Assembly (NCBI RefSeq): GCF_964204645.1
Contig: NC_134030.1
Coordinates: 1,037,355 to 1,101,354, forward strand
From: Tubulanus polymorphus
Taxonomy: Eukaryota; Animalia; Nemertea
Direction: 5' to 3'
Length of the DNA stretch: 64,000 bases
Below, in pieces: positions 649-27,612 of the stretch. Position 1 is the stretch's first letter. The number at the start of each line of letters is the position of its first letter. The notes under the pieces were generated by a model. It saw nothing but the letters and a program-made list of their open reading frames with translations, searched no databases and was not told the origin of the DNA. The translations under genes were made by a program, and so were the position numbers.

Positions 649-1094
649 AGGAGCATATGGGCTTGATGTTGAGGGACGCCCTTGTCCGCTGGGTGCCTTT
701 TTCGTGGCTTTTGATATCTAAAAAAATTAGTAATAATATTAAATAAATTGAAAATATATCATATATCGAGCGAGTCAAACAGTTCAGTACTTTCTAACAA
801 CTATTCTTAATCATGAATAAATTAGCATGGAAACAGTAAATTTGTACTAACAGTAGGATACGGGCTTGATGTTGAGGGCCCGCACCCCACGTTTTTTTCA
901 CTGCTTTCGGCATTATCTAGAAAAATAAGTAAAACTATAAAATCATTTGAAAATACATAATATATCAGATTGTGGTAATCATGGTAATCATGGTATGAAT
1001 AAATTAGCATGGACGCAGTAAATTTGTTCTAGCACCATTTGTACTGGACGTGAGGGTGCCCTCGCCCGCTGGGCGTTTTTGCAGCTTTAGGCAT
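649..1094 (-). pseudogene. Three orphan copies of coding exon 1 of the 334-aa gene family
   Basis: 717-649 reads AG|ISKATKKAPSGQGRPSTSSPYAP|GT with the ATG mutated to ATA. The copy at ~916-852 is frameshifted. The copy at ~1094-1030 reads MPKAAKTPSGRGHPHVQYKWC* and has lost its splice sites. Confidence 0.8.
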
Positions 1095-1199
1095 ATAGAA
1101 AAAGTAAAAACATTAAATCATTTGAAAATATATCTAGCCTCTCATACAGTTAAGTACTTTTACTTGCCTTATTCTTAAGCATGATATAAATGAATTATG

Positions 1200-1512
1200 C
1201 TGGGCGTGAGACAGAAACGGAAAGAAAACAGGCCGGCCCAATTCCCGGCCACCTTCATACCGAATGTTGAGTCAAAAAGGTGCTTTGGGCTTTAAAGAAT
1301 TGAAGACACTATTGTAAGCCGAAATAATTGTGGAATTGGACTAAAATTAAATCAAAAAATATGTGGTACATGTTATAGTTGATTTTTTTTCAGTGAAGGC
1401 ATATTAGGCGCACATGAACGACTCATGCGTTCAAGGCATATCCCTTCACTTATGAATATTTTTAAGATCAGTTAATAAATCCGGAATTGTCCCCGAACGA
1501 AGCCGCTCCTCC
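1200..1512 (-). pseudogene. Fragment of the last exon (C-terminus EERLVRGQFRIY, frameshifted) plus 3' flank of the 334-aa gene
   Basis: The reverse complement matches ~40213-40530. Confidence 0.8.
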
Positions 1513-1671
1513 AATAGGAATCTCCCAGAGGCAATTTAATTGATGGGCACATTTTCAAAATTTGTTTTGGTTAGCGGGCCCCCGACACAGAGTTATGAAA
1601 ACTGGTCACAACTTTTAACTACATACAAAAAAATTGAATGCATTGAAATTGTATTTGGAGACTGAACTTAC

Positions 1672-1712
1672 TTGGTGCTTGAAAGTCGGGAGGCGTCTCT
1701 GGAGGGGTGCTA

Positions 1713-1743
<31 letters not shown>

Positions 1744-1830
1744 TGTTGTTGTTATTTGACAGATTAGAAACAGGCGTCTCCGGAGGGGTGCGCTGCTGCT
1801 GCTGCTGCTGCTGCTGTTGTGATTCACCGA
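1672..1830 (-). pseudogene. Orphan exon-5 paralogue (polyQ/polyS, PPETP twice)
   Basis: TTTACAG acceptor and GTAAGT donor; encodes GESQ9RTPPETPVSNLSNNNNSNS10TPPETPPDFQAP. The flanks are homologous to 27240-27745 in inverted orientation. Confidence 0.8.
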
Positions 1831-2492
1831 CTGTAAATGGAAATAATATAAAAATAAATGCAACAGAAAATGAACACAACAGGCACTTATTACACGGTAG
1901 TTCAGTAGAATGAAGGGGTCTGGGTAGAAAAACGTGTATTCTAAGATTATCAGTATATTTTTCTGTGAGGAATTTCATAAAAACCGGCACGTACGAGGGA
2001 AGTGAGGCATGTGAGATTGAGGGCGTCACTGATACTTACATTTAGCAGCGGTGACCTTCGCTGCGAGGCAAACTGACGCTAGAAATGAAAATAATATAAA
2101 TACATTAGTCAAATTCATTAACGTTGCTAAGTTCAAGTTGCTGGTTTTTTAAACAATTTTAATAAGAAAAAAATATTCAGGTATAGCTAGCACTATATCA
2201 GGAACGTAGCTTGAGGCGGTTCGGGGGGGTTCGAAAATTCAGTTCCTCGCAAAGAAAAATTAAAAACAGAAATGTTAAACTTACAAATATTGAAATTTGT
2301 TCATTTAATCAAAACCTTCGTTATATCAATAGAAATCTCCCAGAGGCAATTTAATTGATGGGCACATTTTCAAAATTTGTTTTGGTTAGCGGCCCCCGAC
2401 ACAGAGTTATGAAAACTGGTCACAACTTTAACCGTTTTAGCTCCATACAAAAAATTGAATGCGTTGAAATTGTATTTGAAGACTGAACTTAC

Positions 2493-2797
2493 TTCGCGCT
2501 TGGAAGTCAGGAGGCGTCTCTGGCGGAAGGGATGCGCTTCTGCTGCTGCTGTTGTTGTTATCCGAATTCAGAGGTGGCGATCGGCCTGGCGACCCAAAGT
2601 AGAGACGCTAGAAATTAAAAAATAATATAAATATATTAGTCAATTTTATTAAAGTTTAAATTTTCAACATTTTTATTGTAACGTTCATTAGTTAATAAAT
2701 TAGCATGAAGCGATGAATTTGTACTCACAGGTGCATATGGACTTGATGTAGAGGGACCCCCTTGTCCGCTGGGTGCCTTTTTGGTGGCTTTTGACAT
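2493..2797 (-). pseudogene. Intact exon-1 variant (2797-2729) and partial exon 5 (2561-2493)
   Basis: AG|MSKATKKAPSGQGGPSTSSPYAP|GTGAGT and NNNSSSRSASLPPETPPDFQAR|GTAAGT. Confidence 0.8.
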
Positions 2798-2829
2798 CTA
2801 AAAACATTAGTTATAATATTAAATAATAT

Positions 2830-3198
2830 GAAAATATATAATATATCGAGCCAGTCAAACAGTTCAGTACTTTCTAACAACTATTCTTAATCATGAATAA
2901 ATTGAAAATATATCATATATCAACCAGTCAAACAGTTCAGTACTTTCTAACAACTATTCTTAATCATGAATAAATTGAAAATATATCATATATCGAGCCA
3001 GTCAAACAGTTCAGTACTTTCTAACAACTATTCTTAATCATGAATAAATTGAAAATATATCATATATCAACCAGTCAAACAGTTCAGTACTTTCTAACAA
3101 CTATTCTTAATCATGAATAAATTGAAAATATATCATATATCGAGCCAGTCAAACAGTTCAGTACTTTCTTACAACTATTCTTAATCATGAATAAATTA
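2830..3198. repeat. 73/74-bp tandem repeat, ~5 copies, derived from the intron sequence flanking exon 1
   Basis: ATTGAAAATATATC restarts at 2901, 2974, 3048 and 3121; a single copy of the same sequence occurs at ~748-822. Confidence 0.92.
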
Positions 3199-3923
3199 GC
3201 ATGGAAACAGTAAATTTGTACTAACAGTAGGATACGGGCTTGATGTTGAGGGCCCGCACCCCACGTTTTTTTCACTGCTTTCGGCATTATCTAGAAAAAT
3301 AAGTAAAACTATAAAATCATTTGAAAATAAATTATATATCAGATTGTCAAACGGTTCAATACTTTCTTAATCATGGTATGAATAAATTAGCATGGACGCA
3401 GTAAATTTGTACTAGCACCATCGTTTGTACTGAGGGTGCCCTCGCTCATTGAAATTCCCTTTTGTTTACCATGAGGTAACATTTCAGATGGAGCCACTTT
3501 GACTATAATAAACGGTTGTAGTTCTACAGTTCACTGCTTCAGGTTTTCTATTGCAATATGTCACTATTGAACAAGAAACAAGAAATCAATCGAAGTTTGT
3601 CCGAACTGGTTTTTCAGTTTTTCTCCACTCGTCTATAACGGGCTATCAATCAATATGGTCGAATGTGCAGAATGTTCCAGCTGATAAAAACTGGGTTCCA
3701 AAATAATCAGCCCTTTGCATGTGATGATGCGAACGATCTGCCTGGGTGCACCCTGGTATAGATTTGACGATGCAGTAATGTATGACGGACATTACCTGTC
3801 AGTAGCAGAAGCAGGGTTTAATATTCTATAATATAAATTTCGGTTTCAAGCTCAAGAATGATGACTTCAAACAGGCGTTTACGATAACTTACGTCAATTC
3901 CGGACATCGAAATATTAAACCGT

Positions 3924-3954
<31 letters not shown>

Positions 3955-4156
3955 CGGTTCTTTTTGCATACGGGCTTGATGTACTTGGACCCGCGCCCTG
4001 TGTTTTTTTTCATTGCTTTAGGCATAATCTAGAAAAACAAGTAAAAATATTAAATCGATTTAGGCGTTAATCCTTTTTGTGAAACTGGACCCAAGGGTAT
4101 AAAATACTAAGTAAGGGATGAATAAATAAGCATGGAAGCAGTAAATTTGTACTTAC

Positions 4157-4219
4157 TTTATTATAGGGGCTTGAATGTGAGGGGCCCGCGCCCCGTGTTT
4201 TTTTTACAGCTTTTGGCAT
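4157..4219 (-). pseudogene. In-frame exon-1 copy MPKAVKKTRGAGPSHSSPYNK
   Basis: TTTCTAG|ATA ATG ... AAT AAA|GTAAGT. Other in-frame copies: 7662-7600, 10342-10280 and 13965-13903. Confidence 0.85.
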
Positions 4220-4291
4220 TATCTAGAAAAACAAGTAAAAATATTAAATCGTTTGAAAATATATCAGTCAGTCTTATTCTGGTTCAGTGAA

Positions 4292-5186
4292 ATAATTCTT
4301 TATATGGTGCATGTAGGGGTCCAGGGACACCACATCCACTAATTCTCTATATGATGCATGTAGGGGTCCAGGGACACCACATCCACTAATTCTCTATATG
4401 GTGCATGTAGGGGTCCAGGGACACCACATCCACTAATTCTCTATATGGTGCATGTAGGGGTCCAGGGACACCACATCCACTAATTCTCTATATGGTGCAT
4501 GTAGGGGTCCAGGGACACCACATCCACTAATTCTCTATATGATGCATGTAGGGGTCCAGGGACACCACATCCACTAATTCTCTATATGGTGCATGTAGGG
4601 GTCCAGGGACACCACATCCACTAATTCTTTATATGGTGCATGTAGGGGTCCAGGGACACCACATCCACTAATTCTCTATATGGTGCATGTAGGGGTCCAG
4701 GGACACGACATCCACTAATTCTCTATATGGTGCATGTAGGGGTCCAGGGACACCACATCCACTAATTCTCTATATGATGCATGTAGGGGTCCAGGGACAC
4801 CACATCCACTAATTCTCTATATGGTGCATGTAGGGGTCCAGGGACACCACATCCACTAATTCTCTATATGGTGCATGTAGGGGTCCAGGGACACCACATC
4901 CACTAATTCTCTATATGGTGCATGTAGGGGTCCAGGGACACCACATCCACTAATTCTCTATATGGTGCATGTAGGGGTCCAGGGACACCACATCCACTAA
5001 TTCTCTATATGGTGCATGTAGGGGTCCAGGGACACCACATCCACTAATTCTCTATATGGTGCATGTAGGGGTCCAGGGACACCACATCCACTAATTCTCT
5101 ATATGGTGCATGTAGGGGTCCAGGGACACCACATCCACTAATTCTCTATATGGTGCATGTAGGGGTCCAGGGACACCACATCCACT
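4292..5186 (+). repeat. 47-bp satellite, ~19 copies
   Basis: Unit CTAATTCTCTATATGGTGCATGTAGGGGTCCAGGGACACCACATCCA; period 47 (4386 to 4433). Confidence 0.97.
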
Positions 5187-5378
5187 TAGTTGTTGGGCCC
5201 GGGCGCTTTCACCCTTCTTGCTGAAAATCAACTGATATCCTGAATTCTGACTAATTACAGATTGAAAACTGTAATTCACAAGTGCATAATCAATTATTTC
5301 AATCCAAATAAGATTTTCTTAGCTACAGTTTAAATCATCTTAGTTTAATGAAATATGAAAACAAATAAAGATTCTTAC

Positions 5379-5608
5379 CTCCGTCAGATCTCCTTCAAAC
5401 AGCCGTCCCCGGACTCTGTCTGACGAACGAGTGGCGGCCGGGGGCGGCTGTCTGACAGGCCGCTGCTGAGGCGAATTTAATGGACGTGGGGGAGGGGCAG
5501 CAGCGGGCGACATAGGATTAACCGGTGGTGGTATCCTATCGGGAACCAAGTTTCTTTTGAATTCCCCCACCAAGTCCCCAAACGGACATTCTTCTAAAAT
5601 GTTCATCA
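5379..5608 (-). pseudogene. Orphan exon-7 copy, in frame and nearly identical to 38536-38765
   Basis: TTTACAG acceptor, GAG|GTAAGA donor, 230 nt, MNILEECPFGDLV...RGRLFEGDLTE. Confidence 0.88.
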
Positions 5609-7359
5609 CTGTAAAATAAAAATAGAGAGAAATACATTAAACAACAAGTCGAATGGTTTTGATGCTACGGCTATGAATATTATTCCAACAGGGGGCGCCT
5701 GATGTTACTGAAGTATGATTTCAATGTAACTTCAGTAATTAAAATTATTTTTATTCAGCAGTTAAATTGTACAATTATTCGTTATCTATGATTTCCTGAT
5801 GAGATTTACTGTTTGAGCATCCAGAGATTCCAAACTTTGTCGTTTAACCAATAATTGGTTTAACGATATCACACGGCACCTGCTGAACTCTTTGTTACGT
5901 GTATCAGTCTTATATATGTATTTATTACTTATATTTGTGTAAGGATTGTGTGATGTGACAGTGAATAATTAGCATAATTAATGCAAACTGGATTTCGTCT
6001 ACGGACGGATGAAAAGTGAACGCAATAACTATAGTCCCAAGTGAGATAAAAAAAATTAATTAGTTTGAACTTGAAATAGATATCGCTGTCGTGCTGGATT
6101 GGTGAAAAAACCTGTAAAAATAAAATAAAACAAATTATTAGATGGATATTCATGGATGGAAATGACAACTGTAGAGATAGCATCATTGATATATAGCATC
6201 ATTGATATATTACTTCTACGATGATGATACTTAATTGAATTTGAATTTATTCCTAATTAGCGTAATTTATGCAAAACAGCTACTACCCTCTATTTTCAAA
6301 TTACAAATTGAAATAAGCGTGATTTATTAGAAAAAAGTTATCACTTACCGGCGTAGTAGGCGGTAAACTGGTGGCAGTGGCGGTAAACCGCTGGACGGCG
6401 TTGTCGGCAAAAACTGAAAATACAATCGAAGACAATGTTAAAATCCTGATCTGATTTGTATAGTGTAAGTGAATGGTTTTGGGGTTCGGACTGTCTGCCC
6501 ACACGAGAACACCCGACCCTCGCGCTACTGCTGCATATGACTGCTCGGTGCGTCTGAGGAGCCTTGATGGACACTTACCGGCGTAGTAGGCGATAAACCG
6601 GTGTCGAAACCCCGCTGGGCGGCGTTTTTGGCAAAAACTGAAAATACAATCAAAGACAATGTTAAAAACCTGATCTGATTTGTATAGTGTAAGTGAATGG
6701 TTTTGGGGTTCGGACCGTCTGCCCACACGAGAACACCCGACCCTCGCGCTACTGCTGCATTTGACTGCTCGGTGCGTCTGAGGAGCCTTGATGGACAGAA
6801 CACACCATTGATGGAATAATGGTCAATTCAGTCTAACCTCGTTAAAACTCTGTAAATGTGAGTTAAACTCATTGAAATTCCCTTTTGTTTACCATGAGGT
6901 AACATTTCAGATGGAGCCACTTTGACTATAATAAACGGTTGTAGTTCTACTGTTCACTGCTTCAGGTTTTCTATTGCAATATGTCACTATTGAACAAGAA
7001 ACAAGAAATCAATCGAAGTTTGTCCGAACTGGTTTTTCAGTTTTTCTCCACTCGTCTATAACGGGCTATCAATCAATATGGTCGAATGTGCAGAATGTTC
7101 CAGCTGATAAAAACTGGGTTCCAAAATAATCAGCCCTTTGCATGTGATGATGCGAACGATCTGCCTGGGTGCACCCTGGTATAGATTTGACGATGCAGTA
7201 ATGTATGACGGACATTACCTGTCAGTAGCAGAAGCAGGGTTTAATATTCTATATATATATATATATATAAATTTCGGTTTCAAGCTCAAGAATGATGACT
7301 TCAAACAGGCGTTTACGATAACTTACGTCAATTCCGGACATCCAAATATTAAACCGTCG

Positions 7360-7397
<38 letters not shown>

Positions 7398-7734
7398 CGG
7401 TTCTTTTTGCATACGGGCTTGATGTACTTGGACCCGCGCCCTGTGTTTTTTTTCATTGCTTTAGGCATAATCTAGAAAAACAAGTAAAAATATTAAATCG
7501 CTTTAGGCGTTAATCCTTTTTGTGAAACTGGACCCAGGGGTACAAAATACTAAGTATGGGATGAATAAATAAGCATGGAAGCAGTAAATTTGTACTTACT
7601 TTATTATAGGGGCTTGAGGTTGAGGGCCCCGCGCCCCGTGTTTTTTTTGTTGCTTTTGGCATTATCTAGAAAAACAAGTAAAAGTATTAAATCATTTGAA
7701 AATATATCAGTCGGTCTTATTCTGGTTCAGTGAA

Positions 7735-7876
7735 CTAATTCTTTATATGGTGCATGTAGGGGTCCAGGGACACCACATCCACTAATTCTCTATATGGTGC
7801 ATGTAGGGGTCCAGGAACACCACATCCACTAATTCTCTATATGGTGCATGTAGGGGTCCAGGGACACCACATCCAC
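7735..7876 (+). repeat. 47-bp satellite, 3 copies
   Basis: Same unit as 4292-5186. Confidence 0.95.
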
Positions 7877-8069
7877 TTAGTTGTTGGGCCCGGGCGCTTT
7901 CACCCTTCTTGCTGAAAATCAACTGATATCCTGAATTCTGACTAATTACAGATTGAAAACTGTAATTCACAAGTGCATAATCAATTATTTCAATCCAAAT
8001 AAGATTTTCTTAGCTACAGTTTAAATCATCTTAGTTTAATGAAATATGAAAACAAATAAAGATTCTTAC

Positions 8070-8285
8070 CTCCGTCAGATCTCCTTCAAACACCCGCCCA
8101 CGGACTCTTTCTGACCATCTTTTGGCACCCGGGGGCGGCTGGCTGAGGCGAATTTATTGGGCGTGGGGGAGGGGCAGCAGCGGGCGACAAAGGATTAAGC
8201 GGTGGTGGTATCCTATCGGGAACCAAGTTTCTTTTAAACTCCCTCACCAAGTCCCCAAATGGGCAGTCGTCTAAAATGTTGATCA
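8070..8285 (-). pseudogene. Divergent exon-7 copy with a 14-nt frameshifting deletion (a second such copy at 10750-10965)
   Basis: Same splice sites as 5379-5608 but 216 nt long, with 23 substitutions counted by eye. Confidence 0.88.
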
Positions 8286-10036
8286 CTGTAAAATAAAAAT
8301 AGAGAGAAATACATTAAACAACAAGTCGAATGGTTTTGATGCTACGGCTATGAATATTATTCCAACAGGGGGCGCCTGATGTTACTGAAGTATGATTTCA
8401 ATGTAACTTCAGTAATTGAAATTATTTTTATTCAGCAGTTAAATTGTACAATTATTCGTTATCTATGATTTCCTGATGAGATTTACTGTTTGAGCATCCA
8501 GAGATTCCAAACTTTGTCGTTTAACCAATAATTGGTTTAACGATATCACACGGCACCTGCTGAACTCTTTGTTACGTGTATCAGTCTTATATATGTATTT
8601 ATTACTTATATTTGTGTAAGGATTGTGTGACGTGACAGTGAATAATTAGCATAATTAATGCAAACTGGATTTCGTCTACGGACGGATGAAAAGTGAACGC
8701 AATAACTATAGTCCCAAGTGAGATAAAAAAAATTAATTAGTTTGAACTTGAAATAGATATCGCTGTCGTGCTGGATTGGTGAAAAAACCTGTAAAAATAA
8801 AATAAAACAAATTATTAGATGGATATTCATGGATGGAAATGACAACTGTAGAGATAGCATCATTGATATATAGCATCATTGATATATTACTTCTACGATG
8901 ATGATACTTAATTGAATTTGAATTTATTCCTAATTAGCGTAATTTATGCAAAACAGCTACTACCCTCTATTTTCAAATTACAAATTGAAATAAGCGTGAT
9001 TTATTAGAAAAAAGTTATCACTTACCGGCGTAGTAGGCGGTAAACTGGTGGCAGTGGCGGTAAACCGCTGGACGGCGTTGTCGGCAAAAACTGAAAATAC
9101 AATCGAAGACAATGTTAAAATCCTGATCTGATTTGTATAGTGTAAGTGAATGGTTTTGGGGTTCGGACTGTCTGCCCACACGAGAACACCCGACCCTCGC
9201 GCTACTGCTGCATATGACTGCTCGGTGCGTCTGAGGAGCCTTGATGGACACTTACCGGCGTAGTAGGCGATAAACCGGTGTCGAAACCCCGCTGGGCGGC
9301 GTTTTTGGCAAAAACTGAAAATACAATCAAAGACAATGTTAAAAACCTGATCTGATTTGTATAGTGTAAGTGAATGGTTTTGGGGTTCGGACCGTCTGCC
9401 CACACGAGAACACCCGACCCTCGCGCTACTGCTGCATTTGACTGCTCGGTGCGTCTGAGGAGCCTTGATGGACAGAACACACCATTGATGGAATAATGGT
9501 CAATTCAGTCTAACCTCGTTAAAACTCTGTAAATGTGAGTTAAACTCATTGAAATTCCCTTTTGTTTACCATGAGGTAACATTTCAGATGGAGCCACTTT
9601 GACTATAATAAACGGTTGTAGTTCTACTGTTCACTGCTTCAGGTTTTCTATTGCAATATGTCACTATTGAACAAGAAACAAGAAATCAATCGAAGTTTGT
9701 CCGAACTGGTTTTTCAGTTTTTCTCCACTCGTCTATAACGGGCTATCAATCAATATGGTCGAATGTGCAGAATGTTCCAGCTGATAAAAACTGGGTTCCA
9801 AAATAATCAGCCCTTTGCATGTGATGATGCGAACGATCTGCCTGGGTGCACCCTGGTATAGATTTGACGATGCAGTAATGTATGACGGACATTACCTGTC
9901 AGTAGCAGAAGCAGGGTTTAATATTCTATATATATATATATATATAAATTTCGGTTTCAAGCTCAAGAATGATGACTTCAAACAGGCGTTTACGATAACT
10001 TACGTCAATTCCGGACATCCAAATATTAAACCGTCG

Positions 10037-10077
<41 letters not shown>

Positions 10078-10414
10078 CGGTTCTTTTTGCATACGGGCTT
10101 GATGTACTTGGACCCGCGCCCTGTGTTTTTTTTCATTGCTTTAGGCATAATCTAGAAAAACAAGTAAAAATATTAAATCGCTTTAGGCGTTAATCCTTTT
10201 TGTGAAACTGGACCCAGGGGTACAAAATACTAAGTATGGGATGAATAAATAAGCATGGAAGCAGTAAATTTGTACTTACTTTATTATAGGGGCTTGAGGT
10301 TGAGGGCCCCGCGCCCCGTGTTTTTTTTGTTGCTTTTGGCATTATCTAGAAAAACAAGTAAAAGTATTAAATCATTTGAAAATATATCAGTCGGTCTTAT
10401 TCTGGTTCAGTGAA

Positions 10415-10556
10415 CTAATTCTTTATATGGTGCATGTAGGGGTCCAGGGACACCACATCCACTAATTCTCTATATGGTGCATGTAGGGGTCCAGGAACAC
10501 CACATCCACTAATTCTCTATATGGTGCATGTAGGGGTCCAGGGACACCACATCCAC
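10415..10556 (+). repeat. 47-bp satellite, 3 copies
   Basis: Same unit as 4292-5186. Confidence 0.95.
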
Positions 10557-11285
10557 TTAGTTGTTGGGCCCGGGCGCTTTCACCCTTCTTGCTGAAAATC
10601 AACTGATATCCTGAATTCTGACTAATTACAGATTGAAAACTGTAATTCACAAGTGCATAATCAATGATTTCAATCCAAATAAGATTTTCTTAGCTACAGT
10701 TTAAATCATCTTAGTTTAATGAAATATGAAAACAAATAAAGATTCTTACCTCCGTCAGATCTCCTTCAAACACCCGCCCACGGACTCTTTCTGACCATCT
10801 TTTGGCACCCGGGGGCGGCTGGCTGAGGCGAATTTATTGGGCGTGGGGGAGGGGCAGCAGCGGGCGACAAAGGATTAAGCGGTGGTGGTATCCTATCGGG
10901 AACCAAGTTTCTTTTAAACTCCCTCACCAAGTCCCCAAATGGGCAGTTGTCTAAAATGTTGATCACTGTAAAATAAAAATAGAGAGAAATACATTAAACA
11001 ACAAGTCGAATGGTTTTGATGCTACGGCTATGAATATTATTCCAACAGGGGGCGCCTGATGTTACTGAAGTATGATTTCAATGTAACTTCAGTAATTGAA
11101 ATTATTTTTATTCAGCAGTTAAATTGTACAATTATTCGTTATCTATGATTTCCTGATGAGATTTACTGTTTGAGCATCCAGAGATTCCAAACTTTGTCGT
11201 CTAACCAATAATTGGTTTAACGATATCACACGGCACCTGCTGAACTCTTTGTTACGTGTATCAGTCTTATATATGTATTTATTAC

Positions 11286-12446
11286 TTATATTTGTGTAAG
11301 GATTGTGTGATGTGACAGTGAATAATTAGCATAATTAATGCAAACTGGATTTCGTCTAGGGACGGATGAAAAGTGAACGCAATAACTATAGTCCCAAGTG
11401 AGATTAAAAAAATTAATTAGTTTGAACTTGAAATAGATATAGCTGTCGTGCTGGATTGGTGAAAAAACCTGTAAAAATAAAATAAAACAAATTATTAGAT
11501 CGATATTCATGAATGGAAATGACAACTGTAGAGATAGCATCATTGATATATTACTTCTACGATGATGATACTTAATCGAATTTGAATTTATTCCTAATTA
11601 GCATAATTTATGCATAACAGCTACTACCCTCTATTTTCAAATTACAAATTGAAATAAGCGTGATTTATTAGAAAATAGTTATCACTTACCGGTGTAGAAG
11701 GCGGTACACCACTCGGTGGCGTTGTCGGCAAAAACTGAAAATACAATCAAAGACAATGTTAAAAACCTGATCTGATTTGTATAGTGTAAGTAAATGGTTT
11801 TGGGGTTCGGACCGTCTGCCCACACGAGAACACCCGACCCTCGCGCTACTGCTGCATATGACTGCTCGGTGCGTCTGAGGAGCCTTGATGGACAGAACAC
11901 ACCATTGATGGAATAATGGTTAATTCAGTCTAACCTTGTTAAAACTCTGTAAATGTGAGTTAAACTCATTGAAATTCCCTTTTGTTTACCATGAGGTAAC
12001 ATTTCAGATGGAGCCACTTTGACTATAATAAACGGTTGTAGTTCTACTGTTCACTGCTTCACGTTTTCTATTGCAATATGTCACTATTGAACAAGAAACA
12101 AGAAATCAATCGAAGTTTGTCCGAACTGGTTTTTCAGTTTTTCTCCACTCGTCTATAACGGGCTATCAATCAATATGGTCGAATGTGCAGAATGTTCCAG
12201 CTGATAAAAACTGGGTTCCAAAATAATCAGCCCTTTGCATGTGATGATGCGAACGATCTGCCTGGGTGCACCCTGGTATAGATTTGACGATGCAGTAATG
12301 TATGACGGACATTACCTGTCAGTAGCAGAAGCAGGGTTTAATATTCTATAATATAAATTTCGGTTTCAAGCTCAAGAATGATGACTTCAAACAGGCGTTT
12401 ACGATAACTTACGTAAATTCCGGACATTGAAATATCAAACAGTCGA

Positions 12447-12491
<45 letters not shown>

Positions 12492-12559
12492 GTTCTAGTA
12501 GCGTACGGGCTTGACGTTGAGGGCCCCGCGCCCCGGGTTTTTTTTGTCGCTTTTGGCAT
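11286..12559 (-). CDS. Possible truncated paralogue of 124 aa: join(12559..12413, 11734..11690, 11468..11286)
   Basis: Fused exon 1+2 (49 codons, GTAAGT donor), intact exon 3 (15 codons), then exon 4 without its donor reading on to a stop at 11286. All junctions are phase 0. It may be a pseudogene. Confidence 0.4.
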
Positions 12560-12631
12560 TATCTAGAAAAACAAGTAAAAATATTAAATCATTTGAAAAT
12601 ATATCAGTCAGTCTTATTCTGGTTCAGTGAA

Positions 12632-13337
12632 CTAATTCTCTATATGGTGCATGTAGGGGTCCAGGAACACCACATCCACTAATTCTCTATATGGTGCATG
12701 TAGGGGTCCAGGGACACCACATCCACTAATTCTCTATATGGTGCATGTAGGGGTCCAGGGACACCACATCCACTAATTCTCTATATGGTGCATGTAGGGG
12801 TCCAGGGACACCACATCCACTAATTCTCTATATGGTGCATGTAGGGGTCCAGGGACACCACATCCACTAATTCTCTATATGGTGCATGTAGGGGTCCAGG
12901 GACACCACATCCACTAATTCTATATATGATGCATGTAGGGGTCCAGGGACACCGCATCCACTAATTCTCTATATGATGCATGTAGGGGTCCAGGGACACC
13001 GCATCCACTAATTCTCTATATGGTGCATGTAGGGGTCCAGGGACACCACATCCACTAATTCTCTATATGGTGCATGTAGGGGTCCAGGGACACCACATCC
13101 ACTAATTCTCTATATGATGCATGTAGGGGTCCAGGGACACCACATCCACTAATTCTCTATATGGTGCATGTAGGGGTCCAGGGACACCACATCCACTAAT
13201 TCTCTATATGATGCATGTAGGGGTCCAGGGACACCACATCCACTAATTCTCTATATGATGCATGTAGGGGTCCAGGGACACCACATCCACTAATTCTCTA
13301 TATGGTGCATGTAGGGGTCCAGGGACACCACATCCAC
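12632..13337 (+). repeat. 47-bp satellite, ~15 copies
   Basis: Same unit as 4292-5186. Confidence 0.97.
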
Positions 13338-13583
13338 TTAGTTGTTGGGCCCGGGCGCTTTCACCCTTCTTGCTGAAAATCAACTGATATCCTGAATTCT
13401 GACTAATTACAGATTGAAAACTGTGATTCACAAGTGCAATAATCAATGATTTCAATCCAAATAAGATTTTCTTAGCTACAGTTTAATCATTACCAAGTGG
13501 AGCTAGGAGCTGATCTAATGTGTTTTTCATCAGCTAATCATTCATATTTAGGCCTCTATCTAATACATCTGTATGATACTTAC

Positions 13584-13675
13584 GATGATTTTAAACGAAT
13601 CTGACTGTCCAATACGACGTCTGTGAAACGAATGATTCGATCAGCTGACCGCTGGTCACTGTTCAGTAGTGTTCG
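13584..13675 (-). other. Paralogue of non-coding exon 0 joined to the exon-2 acceptor sequence
   Basis: Shares GTCAGCTGATCGAATCATTCGTTTCACAGAC with 19861-19891, ends in a GTAAGT donor, and is preceded by GAATATGTTTTCTCTTTTATAG as at 24489-24510. Confidence 0.7.
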
Positions 13676-14309
13676 CTATAAAAGAGAAAACATATTCATA
13701 CAATGACAACCAATTCATATATATAGGAGTATAATATAATGATAATAATAGAAAAACTATCAGATTAAGAAATAAAGAATATCATAATATCAAATAAATT
13801 GAAAATCCATCATATATCGTGCCACAGTTCAGTACTTTCCTTACAACTATCCTTAATCATGGTATGAATCAATTAGCATGAAAGCAGTAAATTTGTACTT
13901 ACAGCAGCATACGGGCTTGATGTTGAGGGGCCCGCGCCCCGTGTTTTTTTCATAGCTTTTGGCATAATTCGTAATGTGGATGGGCTGGCGTCCCATGTTT
14001 TTTGTTTGCTTTTAGCATACTTGAATGGTTAATGCTTGACATCTCTCCCAGATTGTATTGGCTTGAAACCTGCCTTATTGGTATCTAGAAAAATATGTAT
14101 AACTATTTAATCATTTGAAAATACATTTTATAATTAGTCAGTCATACAGTTCAGTACTTTCTTACACTTATTCTTAAGCATAGTATGAATAAATTAGCAT
14201 GAAAAGAGTAAATTTGTAGTTAGCAGCATACGGGCTGGGAGTAGAGGGGCCGGCGCCCCACATTTTTTCATGGCTTTTGGCATTGTTTTCTTTGTTTGTG
14301 GCAGCAACT

Positions 14310-14500
14310 ATGGGTCGGTCTGTCTTGAGTTTGTTGGTTGTTGCAGCAGCTATGGGTCTGTCTTGAGTTTGTTGATTGTTGCAGCAGCTGGGTCAGTCTT
14401 GAGTTTGTTGGTTGTTTCAGCAGCTATGGGTCAGTCTTGAGTTTGTTGGTTGTTTCAGCAGCAGCAGCTATGGGTCAGTCTTGAGTTTGTTGGTTGTCTT
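14310..14500. repeat. ~38-bp imperfect tandem repeat, ~5 copies
   Basis: GTCTTGAGTTTGTTGGTTGTT(T/G)CAGCAGCTATGGGTC repeated. Confidence 0.85.
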
Positions 14501-14956
14501 GATTTTTTTCTATAGGAATTCAAGAACAAAGTAGTCGCATGTAGGTAGACACATTCATGAATCACTCAGTGTCTTCCTGTCCCACCATAACTTCCTTGAT
14601 CCTCATTACTCGGATTTATTCTCTGAACCACTTTTCCATGTTTGTTGTGGTTTGTTTGTTTTGATTTGCTGGTGGTTTAAGCATGCATGTAGAGGGAGCT
14701 CTATCAATCCAGGAACAGTCAGCTCACAAGCAGCCCCTGCCCCAAAAGGTTTTGACATATTTTCAAAAGCTCTTGTTCTGTAGAACCGAGAGCGGAGCTC
14801 TGACTTGTTCCCCTCACTGCTGAGGTCTACTTTCTCTGATTCGCTGATTGGCTTCTCTTTGGTACATATTGGATGATCAAAAACTAGAAACTGTCATGCG
14901 TTTATTCATTTTGGTATATGTTAAAATTCTTTTACAATAATGGCATATTAGGCACA

Positions 14957-15304
14957 TCAAAACAAATCCGGAATTGTCCCCGAACGAAGTGGCTCCCTCC
15001 ACTCTCCATCAGTATGCCGGGCCACCACCTCTACCTCTCGGGCCACTCGATCACTCGCCAGCTTTTTGGCGAGTGAACGAGTGACCGCCCGAGATACGGA
15101 TGGAGGAGCAGGACCCGCACCTGCCCCAGCCCCACCATCATCCCTCCTCGGCCTCTTCCTATTAATTCTTACCCCTTCCTCCTGATTGCCTTGATCAGCT
15201 GCGCCATCCGCAGGGGCAACTCTTGCCTCCCCTCCCTGAGGAGCCACGACGACCGCAACTTTTCTTTTTCGTTTGGTTCTTGTTTTTTTTGGCGGTGGTC
15301 GTGT
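14957..15304 (-). pseudogene. Orphan exon-8 paralogue, in frame from acceptor to stop
   Basis: TTTCTCTTTACAG|TRPPPKKTRTKRKRKVAVVVAPQGGEARV...WREPLRSGTIPDLF*; many synonymous differences from 39900-40292. Confidence 0.85.
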
Positions 15305-15632
15305 CTGTAAAGAGAAAAAATGAACAATAAGTATTTAGTATAATACACCTATGTGCGTATAATACACCTATGTGAGTCCTTCGCTATTAAACACATAGAA
15401 CTGTGGAACTGGATCCCGAGGCTAATCTAAATGCGCGCAACTGAGTCCAAGTGCAACTAAAGCACACAACTGCGGATCAGATAAATCATTGGTAGATTCA
15501 CTTGTAAAATATCTCGCTAAGAACAAACTAAAAACTGTAGAATGTTGTTGAAACTGTTGTGTGTTATTCATTTGGGTATATGTTATATTTGAATTTTTTT
15601 CAATGAAGGCATATTAGGCGCACATGAACGTC

Positions 15633-16030
15633 TCATGCGTTCAAGGCATATCCCTTCACTGAAAGAATATTCTTTAGATCAGTTAACAAATCCGGAATTG
15701 GCCCCGAACGAAGTGGCACCCTCCACTCTCCATCAGTATGCCGGGCCACCACCTCTACCTCTCGGGCCACTCGATCACTCGCCAGCTTTTTGACGAGTGA
15801 CCGCCCAAGATACGGATGGAGGAGCAGGAGGAGCAGGACCCGCACCATCTCAAGCCCCACCACCATCCCTCCTCGGCCGCTTCCTATTTATCCCCTCCCC
15901 TTCCTCCCGATTACCTTCGTCAGCCGCACCATCCGCCGGGACCACTCTTGCTCCTCCTCCCTGCGGAGCCACGACGACCGCAACTGGTACTTTTCGGTTT
16001 CTCTTGGTTTCCCACCATCTTTCAAAAGAG
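15633..16030 (-). pseudogene. Second exon-8 paralogue with altered 5' end and a frameshift
   Basis: Homologous to 39940-40330; deletion near VTRS. Confidence 0.8.
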
Positions 16031-16944
16031 AACTATCGATATATCATTAGCTACAAGGAAACTTTTCAGAAACTTTTTCAGGTCATTCTTTCTTGTATTA
16101 TTAGCATTTGATTCTCTATATATCGTCAGAACATGGACTCAGAGTGTTTCTTTAATGGTTAAGAATGTCTCTTTAACCAACATCCCCCTAGCCTGCTTCC
16201 TACATATCCCTTCCCTTTCCTCCTGATTACCTTTGATCCCCACTGCCTAGCAGCTAACAGCTGCTGCTATTTTATCTGGTTTACATGTTTTGCAGATAGT
16301 GTCTGTTATGCTATAGTTGTTCTTTTAATCGTTTAACTTCTTCATCTGAAATTTCATTATTCTAATTTCAGTTTCACGCAGGAAATGGTTCATGAAAATC
16401 TGCATTGAGACTGGGACGAAATGTGCATTGAGACGGATGAAATCTGCATGAACAGAGATATACTTTAAGATCCCCATTTTATCCATCGGAGTGAATGTAC
16501 ATCCACTACTCACAGGTAGCAAACCTACAAACGCTAAACACTCATCCCTGGGCCCTGATTCAAAAATAAAAATAAAAGATTAAATTAAGAATTAACATTT
16601 TTATGAATCAGTGATCAGTTTCATAAAATAAGTCCTAAATTAATTTTAGGGGTTTATTATTTCAGATTGAAATGAATTCTTCATGTTTATGCAATTCTCA
16701 TTATCTTTCATTGCAGCATTTATATATTCAATTTTAATCATACATGTGAAATATATAATGTATTTTCAGGGAAACGTAAACAAGAAAGGAAGGGAAGAAA
16801 GAGAAAGGAAGGGAAGAAACAGAAGGGAAGGGAAGAAAGAGAAGGGAAGAAAGAGTTGGATGATTAATGCGCAATTATTCTCCATTCCGAATTCCTGTAT
16901 TCGACTCTAGGTGATCATCATACGAACGAGATATAGAAAAAAAA

Positions 16945-17280
16945 CATTACTGAAGTCATCTCTATTTTTTAGTCTCAATTTGTATTTCTAATTCAATTTA
17001 CTAAGTGTGTAAGTCATCATTTGGAAGTGTAAGTCATCATTTGGATAAATCGTCACATTACTGAAGTCATCTCTATTTTTTAGTCTCAATTTGTATTTCT
17101 AATTCAATTTACCAAGTGTAAGTCATAATTTGGATAAATCGTCACATTACTGAAGTCATCTCTATTTTTTAGTCTCAATTTGTATTTCTAATTCAATTCA
17201 CTAAGTGTGTAAGTCATCATTTGGATAAGTCGTCACATTATTGAAGTCATCTCTATTTTGAAGTCTCAATTAGTATTCAA
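16945..17280. repeat. ~90-bp tandem repeat, ~3.5 copies
   Basis: CATTA(C/T)TGAAGTCATCTCTATTTT restarts near 16945, 17056, 17145 and 17236. Confidence 0.88.
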
Positions 17281-19729
17281 TTTACTTCAGATAACGTAAT
17301 TTGGTTTAATCACGAGTCGTCAACATTATAATCAATGTAACTACAGTGACTACATTATTGTCCTTTTATTGAGAAATTTATGTTAATTTTTGATTTCTGG
17401 GATAAATCAAAATTCAAATGTTATCATTTTTTGTATCAAAAATTGTAAAAAATTGAATAATTTGTGTGCTATTGAAACATTCAGTTATGGGGAGTTTTAA
17501 GCTCAGAAAACTTTGAGCCTGTTTATACAAGTGTTGTAACAAGTGTTGAACAATTCAAAGATCATGTTGTTTATACTTTGTCATGTTAGAAAAAATGTTT
17601 TCTAATATATTGATGTTTCTAAAAAAACATATGATTCAACTTTAAAAGGCCAACAAGCCTTCTAATAAAACTAGTTTGTCATATATATATATATATTACT
17701 TGGTCATTGTCAAGTTTTTAAAAAAATATTTTGGTTTTCTCAGCTTTCTCTGGTGGAAATTTCTTCGTGGAATTCCTCTTCTATACAAGTTCCTCCTCAG
17801 ACTTTTTTTATGCGAGAGTTTATAACAACCGGATCCTCAGAAAATGGTCGGAGTGCCAAGTCTTCGATTTAAGATCACCAGTCTTATCTGAGACCATAAG
17901 TTCACTAGCAAGTTTCACTAGCGATTCCAACAGCTATAGGATGGAACAGTATTATTATATAGGTCACCACTGTGCAATTGAGCCCAGATCATCAGAAAAA
18001 GATAAAAGTGAAGATATGTGATGGGATTCATTGAAAATTTTGCATATATAATTAATTCATTGAACTACTTAATTTGTATGATTTATTTTTTGGGAATTTT
18101 CGAATTTGTCATCAATAACTAGTATATATTTCTTTTCAAGTTGTGAGCGATCTAGTTCTCTGTCGACCCATTGAAAATGAATCGACTCTGAACTGTAGAA
18201 CTGGACCCAGGGAGCTGAATCTCGCGTGCCACAGCAAGATACAGAGCTCTTCAATGTCTTAACCGTCAGGTGCTGCCCGTAAACAAATCAATAGCGGTAA
18301 ATCTGTGAACTAACTTATAGCTCGCTTGCCAGAGTAGAATCATAGCGAGCTGTCTAAAATCTTGAACCGTCTAGTGCTGCCCCTTAATCGATATGTATCG
18401 GAAAAGTGAATTTATTACTCGCATGCCACAGTAGTTGAGTAGTTGGAACATCATGATAGACTCGTTTTTCTGTGCAGCTATAACGGGAACTATTTCAGAT
18501 CTGATAATGAATATAAACTCAGTCACAGTTCGATAACAAACGCCGCTGGGTGAAATTGATGTAAACAAATAATCGTGTTGAAATTGAATTTAGTTTAAGA
18601 TATATTTTCGTGGTAGTTTTTATTTTCAAGCTGTTTACGTTCACTTCAAATGATGAAACGATGAAACCATATTAAATACATCCCTGTTTTAGTGGGGATT
18701 TTGAGTTTTGGTCCTTTCCGTATCTTCTAGAAACATCAAGTAGAAAGGCATTAACTGAACCCTATGTCTTTAACTTCAGGAGTCTATATGGAGTTTTCGG
18801 ATGCCTCTTTTCCTCACTTCTTGCATTCGTCACTATTAGAAATCCGGACAAACTGAATTCAGTTCGACGAGGCCGAAGAACAGAAGACCAAAGAGTGATC
18901 TGCACTAGCCGCAGGGTTCGTGTTGGCTTGGACCGGTGGGAGGCAATCAAACCCCGACACGTGAAGATGTATCCTCAAAAATGGATACCGGAACGCTTCT
19001 CTGGTTTACGATGATCAGTCTGCAGGGATAACTCTTTGGCGGGGCGTGATCGCGTGAATAGCCCAAACTAAACCTTCAGAGTTCACTGTACTACAGCATA
19101 CAACATCTGATAACTTGCATAATAAAGCGCGGCGTGCATGAAAAGAATTGTATAAATGCGGGCAAGATTCCGTGCCCTGGCAATCGAACGCCGGAGTGGA
19201 GGTATTCCATACACTGGTAGGTGAGTCGGAGTAGACTGGTTGCTTGTCCCATAGAGACCGGTAACCAGTCTAGCCACCTCACGATCAGTCTACATTGAAA
19301 AACCATTACTGAAATATGGTTGACGGAAATATTCATTTTATATCAGATTCTAAAATATTTTCTCGTATTGAATACAAAATTTTTATTATCTTAATAAGAT
19401 AAATCTGCCAAAGCTCAACAATTTGAATTAGTGAAAACCGATGTGCGAAGTCGTCAATTCAGTAGCCGGATAGAGCCCGGTAACCAGTCTAACAGTCAAT
19501 GTTCATTGCGCGGGAATGAACGGGCAACCAATCTACGATGAAAAATCATTTCTGAAAAATTATGAACGGAGATATTCATTTTACTTTGAATTTTGAATTA
19601 TCTTTTAAAACTGACAGCCATATTAACCAAAGTATTAATAGTAAATCTGATAAAATCTAATACCGGTTTTAGAATAGGTGAAAACTGATTTATGTGATGC
19701 CGTCGGTTCAGAAGACTGATCCGTAGAAT

Positions 19730-19835
19730 CGTTCGCCACTTTCTTCCGGTCCACTTACTTCCGCGTTTGTGATTTGCATACAAGTAGTTTGAATGTTAAA
19801 TGTATTAAGCCGCGTGTTGATTGGTTGAGGTCAGT
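19730..19835 (+). promoter_or_regulatory. Candidate (possibly bidirectional) promoter of the 334-aa gene
   Basis: ETS-like CTTCCGG/ACTTCCG (~19744-19763), octamer ATTTGCAT 19772-19779, CHR-like TTTGAA 19788-19793, inverted CCAAT 19820-19824, Inr-like TCAGT 19831-19835, and donors on both strands. Duplicated at ~53770-53876. Confidence 0.5.
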
Positions 19836-19899
19836 GCGGTTTACTGAACGATGACCAGCTGTCAGCTGATCGAATCATTCGTTTCACAGACATTACGAC
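19831..19899 (+). other. Putative non-coding exon 0 (5' UTR); start approximate
   Basis: GAC|GTAAGT donor at 19900. Exon 1 begins directly at a splice acceptor, so an upstream exon is required. The sequence is conserved in the paralogue at 13584-13675. Confidence 0.6.
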
Positions 19900-22495: not shown

Positions 22496-22547
22496 GTTTT
22501 TGTCAATCATCATATCAAGATTTGCAATCCCAGTTGCCTTCAAGTTT

Positions 22548-23220: not shown

Positions 23221-23289
23221 TTCACTGAACCAGAATAAGACCGACTGATATATTTTCAAATGATTTAATATTTTTACTTGTTTTTCTAG

Positions 23290-27571: not shown

Positions 27572-27612
<41 letters not shown>

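Follow-up and report, generated by a model that had tools for sequence, protein, structure and literature searches.

An amplified gene and a block of backward copies of its exons

The window, that is, the whole 64,000-nt stretch of Tubulanus polymorphus DNA analysed here, carries on its plus strand a gene, gene A, whose model we re-derived as eight exons, E1 to E8, spanning positions 23290-40292. AG/GT boundaries were present at every exon, and the coding length was 978 nt, that is, 325 codons and a stop. Exon numbers below follow this model, from which those of the original prediction are partly offset.

Gene A, re-derived exon model, with its 47-bp satellite (sat47):
22548-23221, sat47 block ahead of gene A
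22548-23352, plus strand, sat47 block and E1, right arm of a head-to-head inverted repeat
23290-23352, plus strand, E1
24511-24600, plus strand, E2
25010-25054, plus strand, E3
25425-25451, plus strand, E4
27315-27353, plus strand, E5
27564-27654, plus strand, E6
38536-38765, plus strand, E7
39900-40292, plus strand, E8

Gene A belongs to an orphan family of about 30 copies with fast-changing 5' exons, encoding a disordered, NLS-bearing protein. At least 27 sense copies showed the full E1-E2 spacing or an E7 at 96-100% identity. A large protein collection held no record of a protein resembling E8, and no Rfam match was found within the window. Among the sense genes, noncoding diversity was 0.4-1.8%, against up to 14% in E1 and up to 9% in E3, and the change in diversity came no more than a few bases from the splice sites. 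Most exon differences were silent, and the exon variants assorted independently of one another.

By blastn and pairwise alignment, about 38 minus-strand copies of exons E1-E8 were found at 0.6-16.2 kb, all in a single orientation and interleaved with sat47, which confirmed the 15-kb opposite-strand array of scrambled exon copies described in the original prediction. Most copies retained their splice-site flanks (the 12-nt flanks were those of the gene), and many were truncated or frameshifted. The block was 71-99% identical to the genes, as a mosaic, and exon-derived sequence made up 22% of it versus 5.8% of the gene. It extended at least 2.1 kb leftwards beyond the window start, with further backward E1 copies and one E7 copy lying outside the window, left of an 80-bp satellite. 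Three compact units (u1-u3) had a common make-up: E1, a fused E1+2 lacking the intron, or both, then E3 (once or twice), the remnant of an E4, and E7.

Features of the backward block:
1-449, 80-bp satellite, 5.6 copies, interrupting the block
637-726, 840-928 and 1022-1103, minus strand, three old E1-like mini-exons, 68-77% identical to E1: one in frame with ATA replacing ATG, one with a 1-nt deletion, one without splice sites
1196-1512, minus strand, E8 tail and 3' flank, 92% identical to genes, broken by indels near the stop codon
1583-2557, minus strand, old-lineage block of three E6 and one E5, 83-90% identical to genes, gene order not kept, fixed differences from all sense genes
1672-1762, 1772-1830 and 2493-2557, minus strand, its E6 copies
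2040-2078, minus strand, its E5 copy
2717-2806, minus strand, E1-like mini-exon, in-frame variant
2822-3197, 74-bp tandem repeat between E1-like mini-exons
3214-3302, minus strand, E1-like mini-exon with a 1-nt deletion
3893-4028, minus strand, fused E1+2 without intron 1; an extra base in the E1 part gives a frameshift and an in-frame stop
4157-4222, minus strand, intact class-I E1
4293-5186, sat47, 19 copies, opposite in orientation to that of gene A at 22548-23221
5187-7733, minus strand, compact unit u3
5379-5608, minus strand, u3 E7, identical to E7 of gene B and of the gene at 232 kb, with block-type flanks
6090-6123, minus strand, u3 E4 remnant without donor site
6349-6413 (65 nt) and 6579-6637 (59 nt), minus strand, u3 E3 variants
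7327-7471, minus strand, u3 fused E1+2, frameshifted
7600-7665, minus strand, u3 intact E1
7878-10413, minus strand, compact unit u2, 99.9% identical to u3 outside E7
8070-8285, minus strand, u2 E7, old type, with 23 substitutions and a frameshifting 14-nt deletion
10280-10345, minus strand, E1 copy
10558-12630, minus strand, compact unit u1
10750-10965, minus strand, u1 E7, old type, frameshifted
11447-11480, minus strand, u1 E4 remnant
11690-11734, minus strand, u1 E3, identical to E3 of gene A
12413-12562, minus strand, u1 fused E1+2, reading frame intact
12631-13338, sat47, 15 copies
13891-13965 and 14212-14283, minus strand, two E1-like copies
14317-14497, minus strand, 38-bp tandem repeat derived from the 3' end of E1 and the 5' end of E2
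14922-15316, minus strand, E8 copy 2, old type throughout, 11% diverged, acceptor site retained, open frame of about 115 codons ending early because of a replaced 3' end
15638-16010, minus strand, E8 copy 1, mosaic, 5' end replaced, deletions of 9 nt and 5 nt
16176-16243, minus strand, E8 fragment

The predicted identity between the u1 E3 copy and exon 3 of gene A held, and extended over 12 nt on each side. The left arm of the inverted repeat is formed by the sat47 block at 12631-13338 and the first 61 nt of the u1 fused exon (12504-12562). Compared with the sat47 and E1 of gene A (22548-23345), the stretch 12504-13304 was 97.3% identical over 801 nt, with a 9.2-kb spacer.

Recurrence and growth of the block

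Beyond what had been predicted, the backward block turned out not to be unique to the window. The arrays total about 1.2 Mb, of which we read 264 kb. In all seven repeat units (about 33 kb each) readable there, a short antisense block made up of an E1 remnant, sat47 and a truncated E8 stood head-to-head with the gene.

Short block of the next repeat unit:
48921-51259, minus strand, whole short antisense block
48921-49027, minus strand, fused-type E1 remnant
49071-49916, sat47
50333-50372, minus strand, E1 fragment
50713-51020, minus strand, truncated E8
51202-51259, minus strand, E8 fragment

Together with the gene's own sat47 and E1, the short block makes a palindrome-like head-to-head pair, whose inverted arms in this next unit (48927-49916 versus 55811-56805) were 94.8% identical. 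The long form of the block was present at about five places, the window copy being the left edge of the chromosome-6 array, and a junction specific to the compact units occurred eight times at five genomic places. A second long form, at 195-207 kb, was colinear at 96-99% identity and had only one compact unit. The chromosome-3 array also contained opposite-orientation E1 and E7-flank matches, as well as tandem E1 modules with splice sites, 174 nt apart.

One suggestion of the original prediction was that the array consists of decay products of unequal crossing-over. Several observations support it: the block holds three tandem 2.7-kb mini-copies flanked by sat47, two of which (u2 and u3) differ by 0.1%; frameshifts and deletions abound; and the colinear long form 195 kb rightwards has a different copy number. 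Growth proceeds by unequal crossing-over between sat47 blocks, and decay by frameshifts and deletions.

Gene conversion and its direction

Over the roughly 2,350 nt outside E7, 3 events separated u2 from u3, versus 24 events within a 203-nt E7 patch (binomial P about 1e-23). In this patch, u3 was exactly the sense E7 of gene B and retained block-type markers in its flanks. A similar mosaic was seen in E8 copy 1, whose centre was 2% from sense E8 and whose 3' part was 13% from it and matched the old copy 2 (Fisher P 4e-4). Within a single 2.7-kb unit, identity to genes spanned 80% to 99%. Relations among exon copies were therefore mosaic and not tree-like, the mosaicism lying mainly in the backward copies.

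Conversion patches measured roughly 75-300 bp, and their direction was traceable at E7 and E8. Parsimony on 7 genes (E1-E6), 6 genes (E7-E8) and thirty 3-kb loci points to the backward copy as the recipient in two cases, E7 of u3 and the mosaic E8 copy 1. A sense-type segment at E3 of u1 is compatible with a transfer in the same gene-to-block direction, but it is not polarisable. None of the 6-7 intact genes had the variants that distinguish the block at E4, at E6 and in the 3' part of E8. An ambiguous candidate for the reverse transfer was found at 214.6 kb, where the E1 of the gene starts with 33 nt that matched no other sense gene and were those of the short-block E1 (at least 6 units).

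Gene conversion would thus overwrite patches of the block, and at E7 the donor was probably an intact gene, which may lie 66 kb or more away and not in the facing arm. Information seems to flow mainly from gene to block, so that the block would preserve, in overwritten form, exon versions both old and current and would not supply new ones. One observation is unaccounted for by a simple scrap-heap picture, namely that old-type E7 was 10.6% diverged from genes in the exon and 2-3% in the flanks.

Selection-filtered variation in E1

Class-I E1 showed a pS of 0.33-0.37 and a pN/pS of 0.20-0.24, alike for gene-gene, gene-block and block-block pairs, and the frame was intact in 12 of the 12 class-I copies of the block. 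At one orthologous position in four long-form blocks, 13 of the 66 sites of E1 were variable versus about 2% in the flanks, and of the codon differences, eight were silent and two changed the amino acid. Backward E1 variation is thus selection-filtered, with a pN/pS of 0.2 as in the genes. Repeated overwriting from diverse genes would explain such exon-limited diversity in untranslated copies.

Against a block that is mere debris stand the kept splice flanks and the intact E1 frames, which may point to use of some of its parts.

Interpretation of the block

We favour, at a probability of about 0.58, the view that the block is made of pseudo-copies of the adjoining amplified gene that were inverted, lost internal parts, were duplicated again in part and are overwritten in patches by gene conversion. 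The block is most likely non-coding, and we infer that it has no function.

It is possible, though unlikely, that the backward blocks are sources of silencing RNA, a further suggestion of the original prediction. As putative piRNA- or endo-siRNA-type loci, they would yield transcripts antisense to their exon copies, either by read-through from the array's upstream gene or from the duplicated sat47+E1 module toward its neighbour's 3' exons. By pairing with the mRNAs of the family, the RNAs would hold in check a nuclear-protein gene that is amplified and possibly selfish, and as exon versions change, gene conversion would update the guides. The family resembles a conflict gene (orphan, about 30 copies, NLS-bearing disordered protein, fast-changing 5' exons), the block is richer in exon sequence than the gene, antisense exon copies precede 7 of the 7 genes read, the chromosome-3 array also has its opposite-orientation matches, and in every intact gene antisense identity is exact over 132-230 nt at E7 and over 83-135 nt at E8. 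Parallels exist in Su(Ste)/Stellate (PMC2691822) and in the hairpin-RNA suppressors of Dox (PMC10292708). Part of this evidence has a simpler account, however: the exon enrichment of the block over the gene is expected anyway from a few deletions in long introns, and refreshing by gene conversion occurs between any repeats, selection being unnecessary. Moreover, no hairpin is possible within the block, where all copies have the same orientation, and the nearest opposite-orientation partner is 5.8-9.2 kb off. If the sat47+E1 modules were promoters, they would transcribe the block in its own sense direction.

The original prediction also raised the idea of a donor library, in which silent cassettes would be copied into intact genes by gene conversion to give hypervariable E1 and E3 versions. 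Conversion between block and genes is real, E1 and E3 variants are common to both, E1 diversity in the block equals that in the genes, and the 33-nt E1 match in one gene could be read in this way. We nevertheless consider this idea improbable, since wherever direction was traceable the backward copy was the recipient, and block-type E4, E6 and E8 variants did not appear in the genes. Explaining sense E1 from the block took 43 breakpoints and 13 novel sites, and from other genes 41 and 18; the counts being similar, the block adds no explanation of sense E1 haplotypes. The tracts implied, 12-20 nt, are far below the roughly 200-nt tracts observed, and E1 site incompatibility was independent of distance (PHI P 0.7). 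For the genes at 91.7 and 124.9 kb, no stretch that E1 had in common with a backward copy anywhere in the 264 kb was longer than 15 nt. Selection-filtered E1 variation is unexpected for silent donors, and about 30 intact genes are present instead of one expression site. As for E1 of gene B, which had been read as a combination of block segments, its 5' string does occur at 7600-7665 and 10280-10345 and its 3' string at 4157-4222, but both are also the commonest sense-gene strings, and this E1 is close to the commonest sense haplotype.

Finally, the block might contain genuine coding exons on the minus strand, with symmetric 63-69 nt E1-like mini-exons used in tandem or alternatively in a second, shorter gene form. 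This would fit the intact class-I frames and their pN/pS, the peptide motif kept through in-frame indels at 637-726 and 2717-2806, and the spliceable E1 modules of chromosome 3. It is nevertheless very improbable, as none of the compact units has a complete frame, fused E1+2 is frameshifted in 3 of 4 copies and E7 in 2 of 3, the E4 remnants are without a donor site, and the lack of E5 and E6 in the compact units makes E7 unreadable in phase. Nor does any intact E8 come after them, 1-nt deletions or loss of splice sites affect several E1-like copies, and the protein collection records nothing like E8.

Comparison with known systems

Chicken Ig pseudo-V genes and the trypanosome VSG archive are pseudogene donor arrays for gene conversion. 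As there, incomplete and partly frameshifted copies are clustered here beside intact genes and linked to them by gene conversion. In contrast, the flow here is into pseudo-copies, the variable exons of the genes are no better explained as mosaics of the block, variation in the block is selection-filtered, and the genes number about 30 where those systems have one expression site.

Su(Ste) is an antisense small-RNA suppressor of the amplified Stellate genes (PMC2691822, PMC10567549), and the Nmy and Tmy hairpin RNAs suppress the Dox family (PMC10292708, 10.1101/2021.08.05.454923). The present block likewise consists of fragments of an amplified, fast-evolving family placed in opposite orientation near or among the genes, and current exons are matched exactly over long stretches. 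Unlike those suppressors, it is known from sequence alone and has no inverted pair within one plausible transcript; its fragments carry introns and splice flanks, and they stand ahead of every gene read and not at one dedicated suppressor locus.

In MHC genes, introns are homogenised by gene conversion and exons remain distinct. The same has been described for the gibbon L/M opsin genes (PMC3213168). Low noncoding diversity (0.4-1.8%) next to 14% in E1 and 9% in E3, and the independent assortment of exon variants, resemble this situation. Here, however, most exon differences are silent, the boundary lies a few bases at most from the splice sites, and the exon-limited pattern is also seen at orthologous positions of untranslated backward copies.

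Human Y and X palindromes hold ampliconic gene arrays with arm-to-arm gene conversion (PMC3723533, PMC8600007). In those palindromes identity is above 99.9%, whereas here it is patchy, at 71-99%; one arm is a degenerate, scrambled pseudo-copy and not a second working gene, and the tracts are about 200-300 bp with a donor possibly 66 kb away or more. Features shared with the palindromes are a multi-copy family whose repeat units are large and almost identical to one another, arms in inverted orientation (sat47+E1, 0.8-1.0 kb at 95-97% identity) around a spacer of several kb, and non-reciprocal transfer between inverted copies, here in the E7 patch and the E8 mosaic.

The intact gene

The exons of gene A, the intact plus-strand copy at 23290-40292, were re-derived from the sequence.

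23290-23352, plus strand, exon 1 (E1)
24511-24600, plus strand, exon 2 (E2)
25010-25054, plus strand, exon 3 (E3)
25425-25451, plus strand, exon 4 (E4)
27315-27353, plus strand, exon 5 (E5)
27564-27654, plus strand, exon 6 (E6)
38536-38765, plus strand, exon 7 (E7)
39900-40292, plus strand, exon 8 (E8)

AG/GT boundaries were found at every exon, and the exons sum to 978 nt, that is, 325 codons and a stop. The next plus-strand copy, gene B, starts at ~56.7 kb, and 51293-64000 matches 17253-30000 at 94-95%. The window is AT-rich and satellite-filled, and its genes have very short exons. Large satellites, whose periods are 19 bp, 40 bp, 63 bp and 265 + 46 bp, occupy 20533-22498, 28528-29317, 33906-36232 and 44688-47356, inside and between the genes; the open frames that the 40-bp satellite keeps on the minus strand probably arise from its repetitive structure alone. 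Intron 1 contains a MITE-like insertion (23416-23525, plus strand), bounded by terminal inverted repeats of ~20 nt. E8 carries two near-perfect RNA/DNA hairpins, one inside the coding sequence (40112-40182, plus strand; -48.2 kcal/mol, z -9.1) and one across the stop codon (40262-40348, plus strand; -47.3 kcal/mol, z -11.9). Deletions in the backward E8 copies fall exactly at these palindromes: the one in the coding sequence has lost 9 nt, and the one at the stop codon 5 or 67 nt.

Protein searches covered E7, E8 and one pseudo-E8, each queried singly rather than as a joined spliced model. Against Pfam, E7, E8 and the pseudo-E8 with an open frame gave only sub-threshold matches, to domains of unknown function. 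A word-based search of a large protein collection found no relatives of E8 at E <= 0.001, and no transcript-derived expression evidence there either. Across the entire window, Rfam gave no match, and a scan of long ORFs for transposon genes gave nothing useful.

Content of the backward block

The original prediction described an opposite-strand archive of scrambled exon cassettes, head-to-head with gene A. By blastn with each exon and its 25-nt flanks, followed by pairwise alignment, we found ~38 minus-strand exon copies at 0.6-16.2 kb, and the archive is real.

15638-16010, minus strand, E8 copy 1
14922-15316, minus strand, E8 copy 2
10558-12630, minus strand, compact unit u1
7878-10413, minus strand, compact unit u2
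5187-7733, minus strand, compact unit u3

The predicted order of cassettes was essentially recovered by these alignments. Splice sites are mostly kept, as had been noticed: in most copies the 12-nt splice flank is that of the gene, with the exon between the flanks diverged. Many cassettes are broken, by a 14-nt deletion in E7 of u1 and u2, an extra base in three of the four fused E1+2 copies, E3 variants of 59 and 65 nt, an E4 without donor site, and truncation or frameshift of both E8 copies. The identity claimed for E3 extends beyond the exon, 11690-11734 being equal to E3 of gene A plus flanks. The fused E1+2 lacks intron 1 precisely, a condition seen in backward copies only, and may represent either an ancient form without the intron or a cDNA-mediated loss. 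The block continues for at least 2.1 kb past the left end of the window, with five further E1 modules and one E7 copy.

A backward block stands before every gene read

We searched a genome of 268 Mb (77 contigs) and read 264 kb of contiguous sequence, that is, the window and 200 kb rightward, plus thirty 3-kb loci; coverage was partial at the 1.49, 1.62 and 1.72 Mb long-form archives and for the greater part of a mirrored copy at 0.68 Mb. Within the 264 kb, a backward block stands 5-8 kb in front of all seven genes. In front of five it takes a short form (e.g. 48921-51259), with a fused-type E1 remnant, the 47-bp satellite sat47, an E1 fragment, a truncated E8 and an E8 fragment. The long form precedes the other two, in this window and at 195-207 kb. 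These two align colinearly, with 96-99% identity, the one at 195-207 kb holding only part of one compact unit. The E4-remnant/E7 junction, unique to the compact unit, was located eight times in the genome, at five places. Further long-form archives are placed at about 0.68, 1.33, 1.49, 1.62 and 1.72 Mb of chromosome 6 and at 0.54 and 0.65 Mb of chromosome 3. No sense E7 was found on chromosome 6 between 0.69 Mb and gene A, which puts the block at the left edge of the array spanning 1.04-1.75 Mb. The same chromosome carries, at 0.65-0.69 Mb, a mirrored module of archive plus gene. An assembly artefact was rejected, since the same architecture occurs at several places, each with its own sequence differences.

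Each unit also contains an inverted repeat, formed by the backward sat47+E1 and the gene's own sat47+E1. It reaches 97.3% identity over 801 nt with a 9.2-kb spacer at gene A, and 94.8% over ~1 kb with a 5.8-kb spacer in the next unit.

Growth and decay of the block

One early reading held that the block was the decay product of unequal crossing-over, and it is supported. The three compact units are bordered by sat47 blocks. Outside E7, the only differences between u2 and u3 are two substitutions and a single 3-nt length change in ~2,350 nt (0.1%), and these units are very recent tandem duplicates. Their near-identity, and the different number of units in the other long form, agree with unequal crossing-over at the sat47 blocks. 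Half of the MITE-like element of intron 1 marks the junction before the fused E1+2 in the compact units, and where the first E1 joins the fused E1+2 lies a short string common to that element and the upstream flank of E1. This points to a rearrangement at microhomology.

Identity of compact-unit segments to sense genes (the intact copies)
sat47+E1, within one 2.7-kb unit: 96-97%
3' half of E2 and intron 2, within one 2.7-kb unit: 94-97%
E4 region, within one 2.7-kb unit: 80-81%
both E3 copies of u2 and u3: 86-94%
E3 segment of u1: 97.6%, to the gene at 216 kb
E7 of u1 and u2: 88-89%
E7 of u3: 99%

Such a spread within a unit cannot be accounted for by one duplication followed by uniform decay. 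The enrichment of the block in exons was rejected as a sign of function: exons make up 5.8% of the gene, ~8 random breakpoints would all fall outside them in 60% of cases, and the long introns may have been acquired later by insertion.

Probable overwriting of archive copies at E7 and E8

Between u3 and u2, all 24 events of the E7 region fall inside one 203-nt patch of E7 (binomial P about 1e-23). The E7 of u3 is identical over 230 nt to that of gene B and of the 232-kb gene, and its upstream flank still carries three archive-type markers; the other E7 state is seen in u1, in u2 and in an older copy at 195 kb. The most economical explanation has a sense gene, 66 kb or more distant, overwriting the E7 of u3 once the u2/u3 duplication had occurred. 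In E8 copy 1 and the short-block copies, the distance from sense E8 is 2% over nt 58-270 and 11-13% over nt 271-345, where variants are shared with copy 2, which is old throughout (Fisher P 4e-4 to 0.01). Whichever way this is read, the recipient is an archive copy.

The archive E4, E5 and E6 form a separate old lineage. Archive-type variants of E4 or E6 were present in none of seven genes, and those common in the 3' part of E8 in none of the six genes read for that exon. Sense E8 has just six variable sites, and no single gene shows a cluster of archive states. The old archive E3 is intermediate between two sense alleles and ancestor-like. When differences of the old-type E7 were polarised by an older copy, seven were derived in genes, six in the archive, and ten were unassigned. 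Although frameshifted, this old-type E7 has diverged from the genes by 10.6% in the exon and by 2-3% in its flanks.

Variation of E1 in genes and in backward copies

Among seven sense genes, noncoding diversity is 0.4-1.8%, as compared with up to 14.3% in E1 and 9.1% in E3. Searching the genome for the exact splice-flank pattern yielded 41 E1 copies of class I, all in the arrays of the family, of which 29 (17 in genes, 12 in backward blocks) were analyzed. They comprise 25 haplotypes, with 25 of 63 sites variable. Silent-site diversity (0.33-0.37) and pN/pS (0.20-0.24) are alike in gene-gene, gene-archive and archive-archive pairs, and the frame is intact in each of the 12 backward copies. Across four long-form archives, the E1 at one orthologous position differs at 13 of 66 sites vs ~2% in 970 nt of flank, and the codon differences are eight silent and two amino-acid-changing. 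Variation filtered in this way by selection at the protein level could not originate in silent copies, so that backward E1 copies must either derive repeatedly from working genes or be in use themselves.

It had been proposed that E1 of gene B combines segments of different archive copies. Strings in common with the copies at 4157-4222 and 7600-7665 do exist; yet this E1 differs by no more than one base from the haplotype most frequent among sense genes of the chromosome-6 array, and needs no archive donor. Composing the E1 haplotypes of genes took 43 breakpoints and 13 novel sites from backward copies, vs 41 and 18 from other genes; by this count, the archive does not account for them. The implied segments of 12-20 nt are far below the ~200-nt tracts at other exons. 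In PHI and four-gamete tests, 107 of 190 site pairs were incompatible (Rm 2), with no distance dependence (P 0.7), and a cassette mosaic within the 63-nt E1 was rejected on that ground. One gene, at 214.6 kb, shares the first 33 nt of E1 with the short-block E1 of at least six units and with no other sense gene, which could reflect archive-to-gene transfer or a retained ancestral version.

Several further observations concern E1. The three bases between the acceptor AG and the ATG (23287-23289 and equivalents) also differ among copies (ATA, AAG, AAT, ATT, AAA or absent), so that the variable stretch begins exactly at the splice acceptor and not at the start codon; this suggests an unannotated exon 5' of E1. 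At serine 16 (E1 codon 16), TCG occurs on chromosome 6 in backward copies only, sense genes using TCT or TCA, and is still used by sense genes of the chromosome-3 array; backward copies seem to retain a spelling lost by local genes. At loci L027-L029 (C3:652802-656244, minus strand), three to five class-I E1 modules stand in tandem with 174-nt spacing, each with an intact 66-nt frame, both splice sites and its own silent spelling. Locus L050 (C6:1384412, around position 1514) is a sense copy, otherwise of gene type, whose E1 is 65 nt long with one G lost from a G run; thus, a frameshift in the first coding exon affects one or more of the seemingly intact genes of the array.

Could the block be a source of silencing RNA?

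The block had also been considered a source of silencing RNA, to which we give about one chance in four. Every gene read has exact antisense matches to backward copies, of 132-230 nt at E7 and 83-135 nt at E8. With such matches in every gene, the rewording of E1 and E3 cannot have freed mRNAs from block-derived RNAs, and this weakens the idea that escape from such RNAs caused the exon variability. It does not argue against the blocks making regulatory small RNAs. All block copies are in one orientation and the nearest opposite partner is 5.8-9.2 kb off, a structure that lends little support to a hairpin locus. If the sat47+E1 module starts transcription, short blocks would transcribe toward the 3' end of the upstream gene. 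A self-updating antisense record, in which conversion copies current exon versions of this amplified, fast-changing nuclear-protein gene into the pseudo-copies before every unit and their transcripts become dsRNA or piRNA precursors policing the family, strikes us as improbable. If true, it would amount to the equivalent, for a host gene, of a piRNA cluster or of Su(Ste), lying outside the arthropods and mammals where such systems are known. If the block makes small RNAs, a genome would here be using backward copies of an amplified gene to police it, as a new example.

Interpretation and comparison with known systems

The idea of a donor library finds no support, the probable recipient of conversion being the archive at E7 and E8, its E4, E6 and E8 3' variants being absent from the genes read, and E1 haplotypes being no better explained by it. 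We propose instead that intact genes would repeatedly overwrite the block by gene conversion, in addition to its decay after unequal crossing-over. The family around the block displays a rare pattern, in which tiny exons are 10-30 times more different between copies than the adjoining introns, mostly at silent sites. This exon-limited variability also occurs at untranslated positions of the block, for which repeated overwriting from diverse genes is the simplest explanation. The block preserves older versions of several exons, of use in polarising changes, and presents conversion tracts of ~200 bp moving between opposite-orientation copies at least 66 kb apart.

Among known systems, Su(Ste)/Stellate (PMC2691822) and the hairpin-RNA suppressors of Dox (PMC10292708) are close by analogy only. 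The closest likeness is to palindromic ampliconic arrays with conversion between inverted arms (PMC3723533, PMC8600007).
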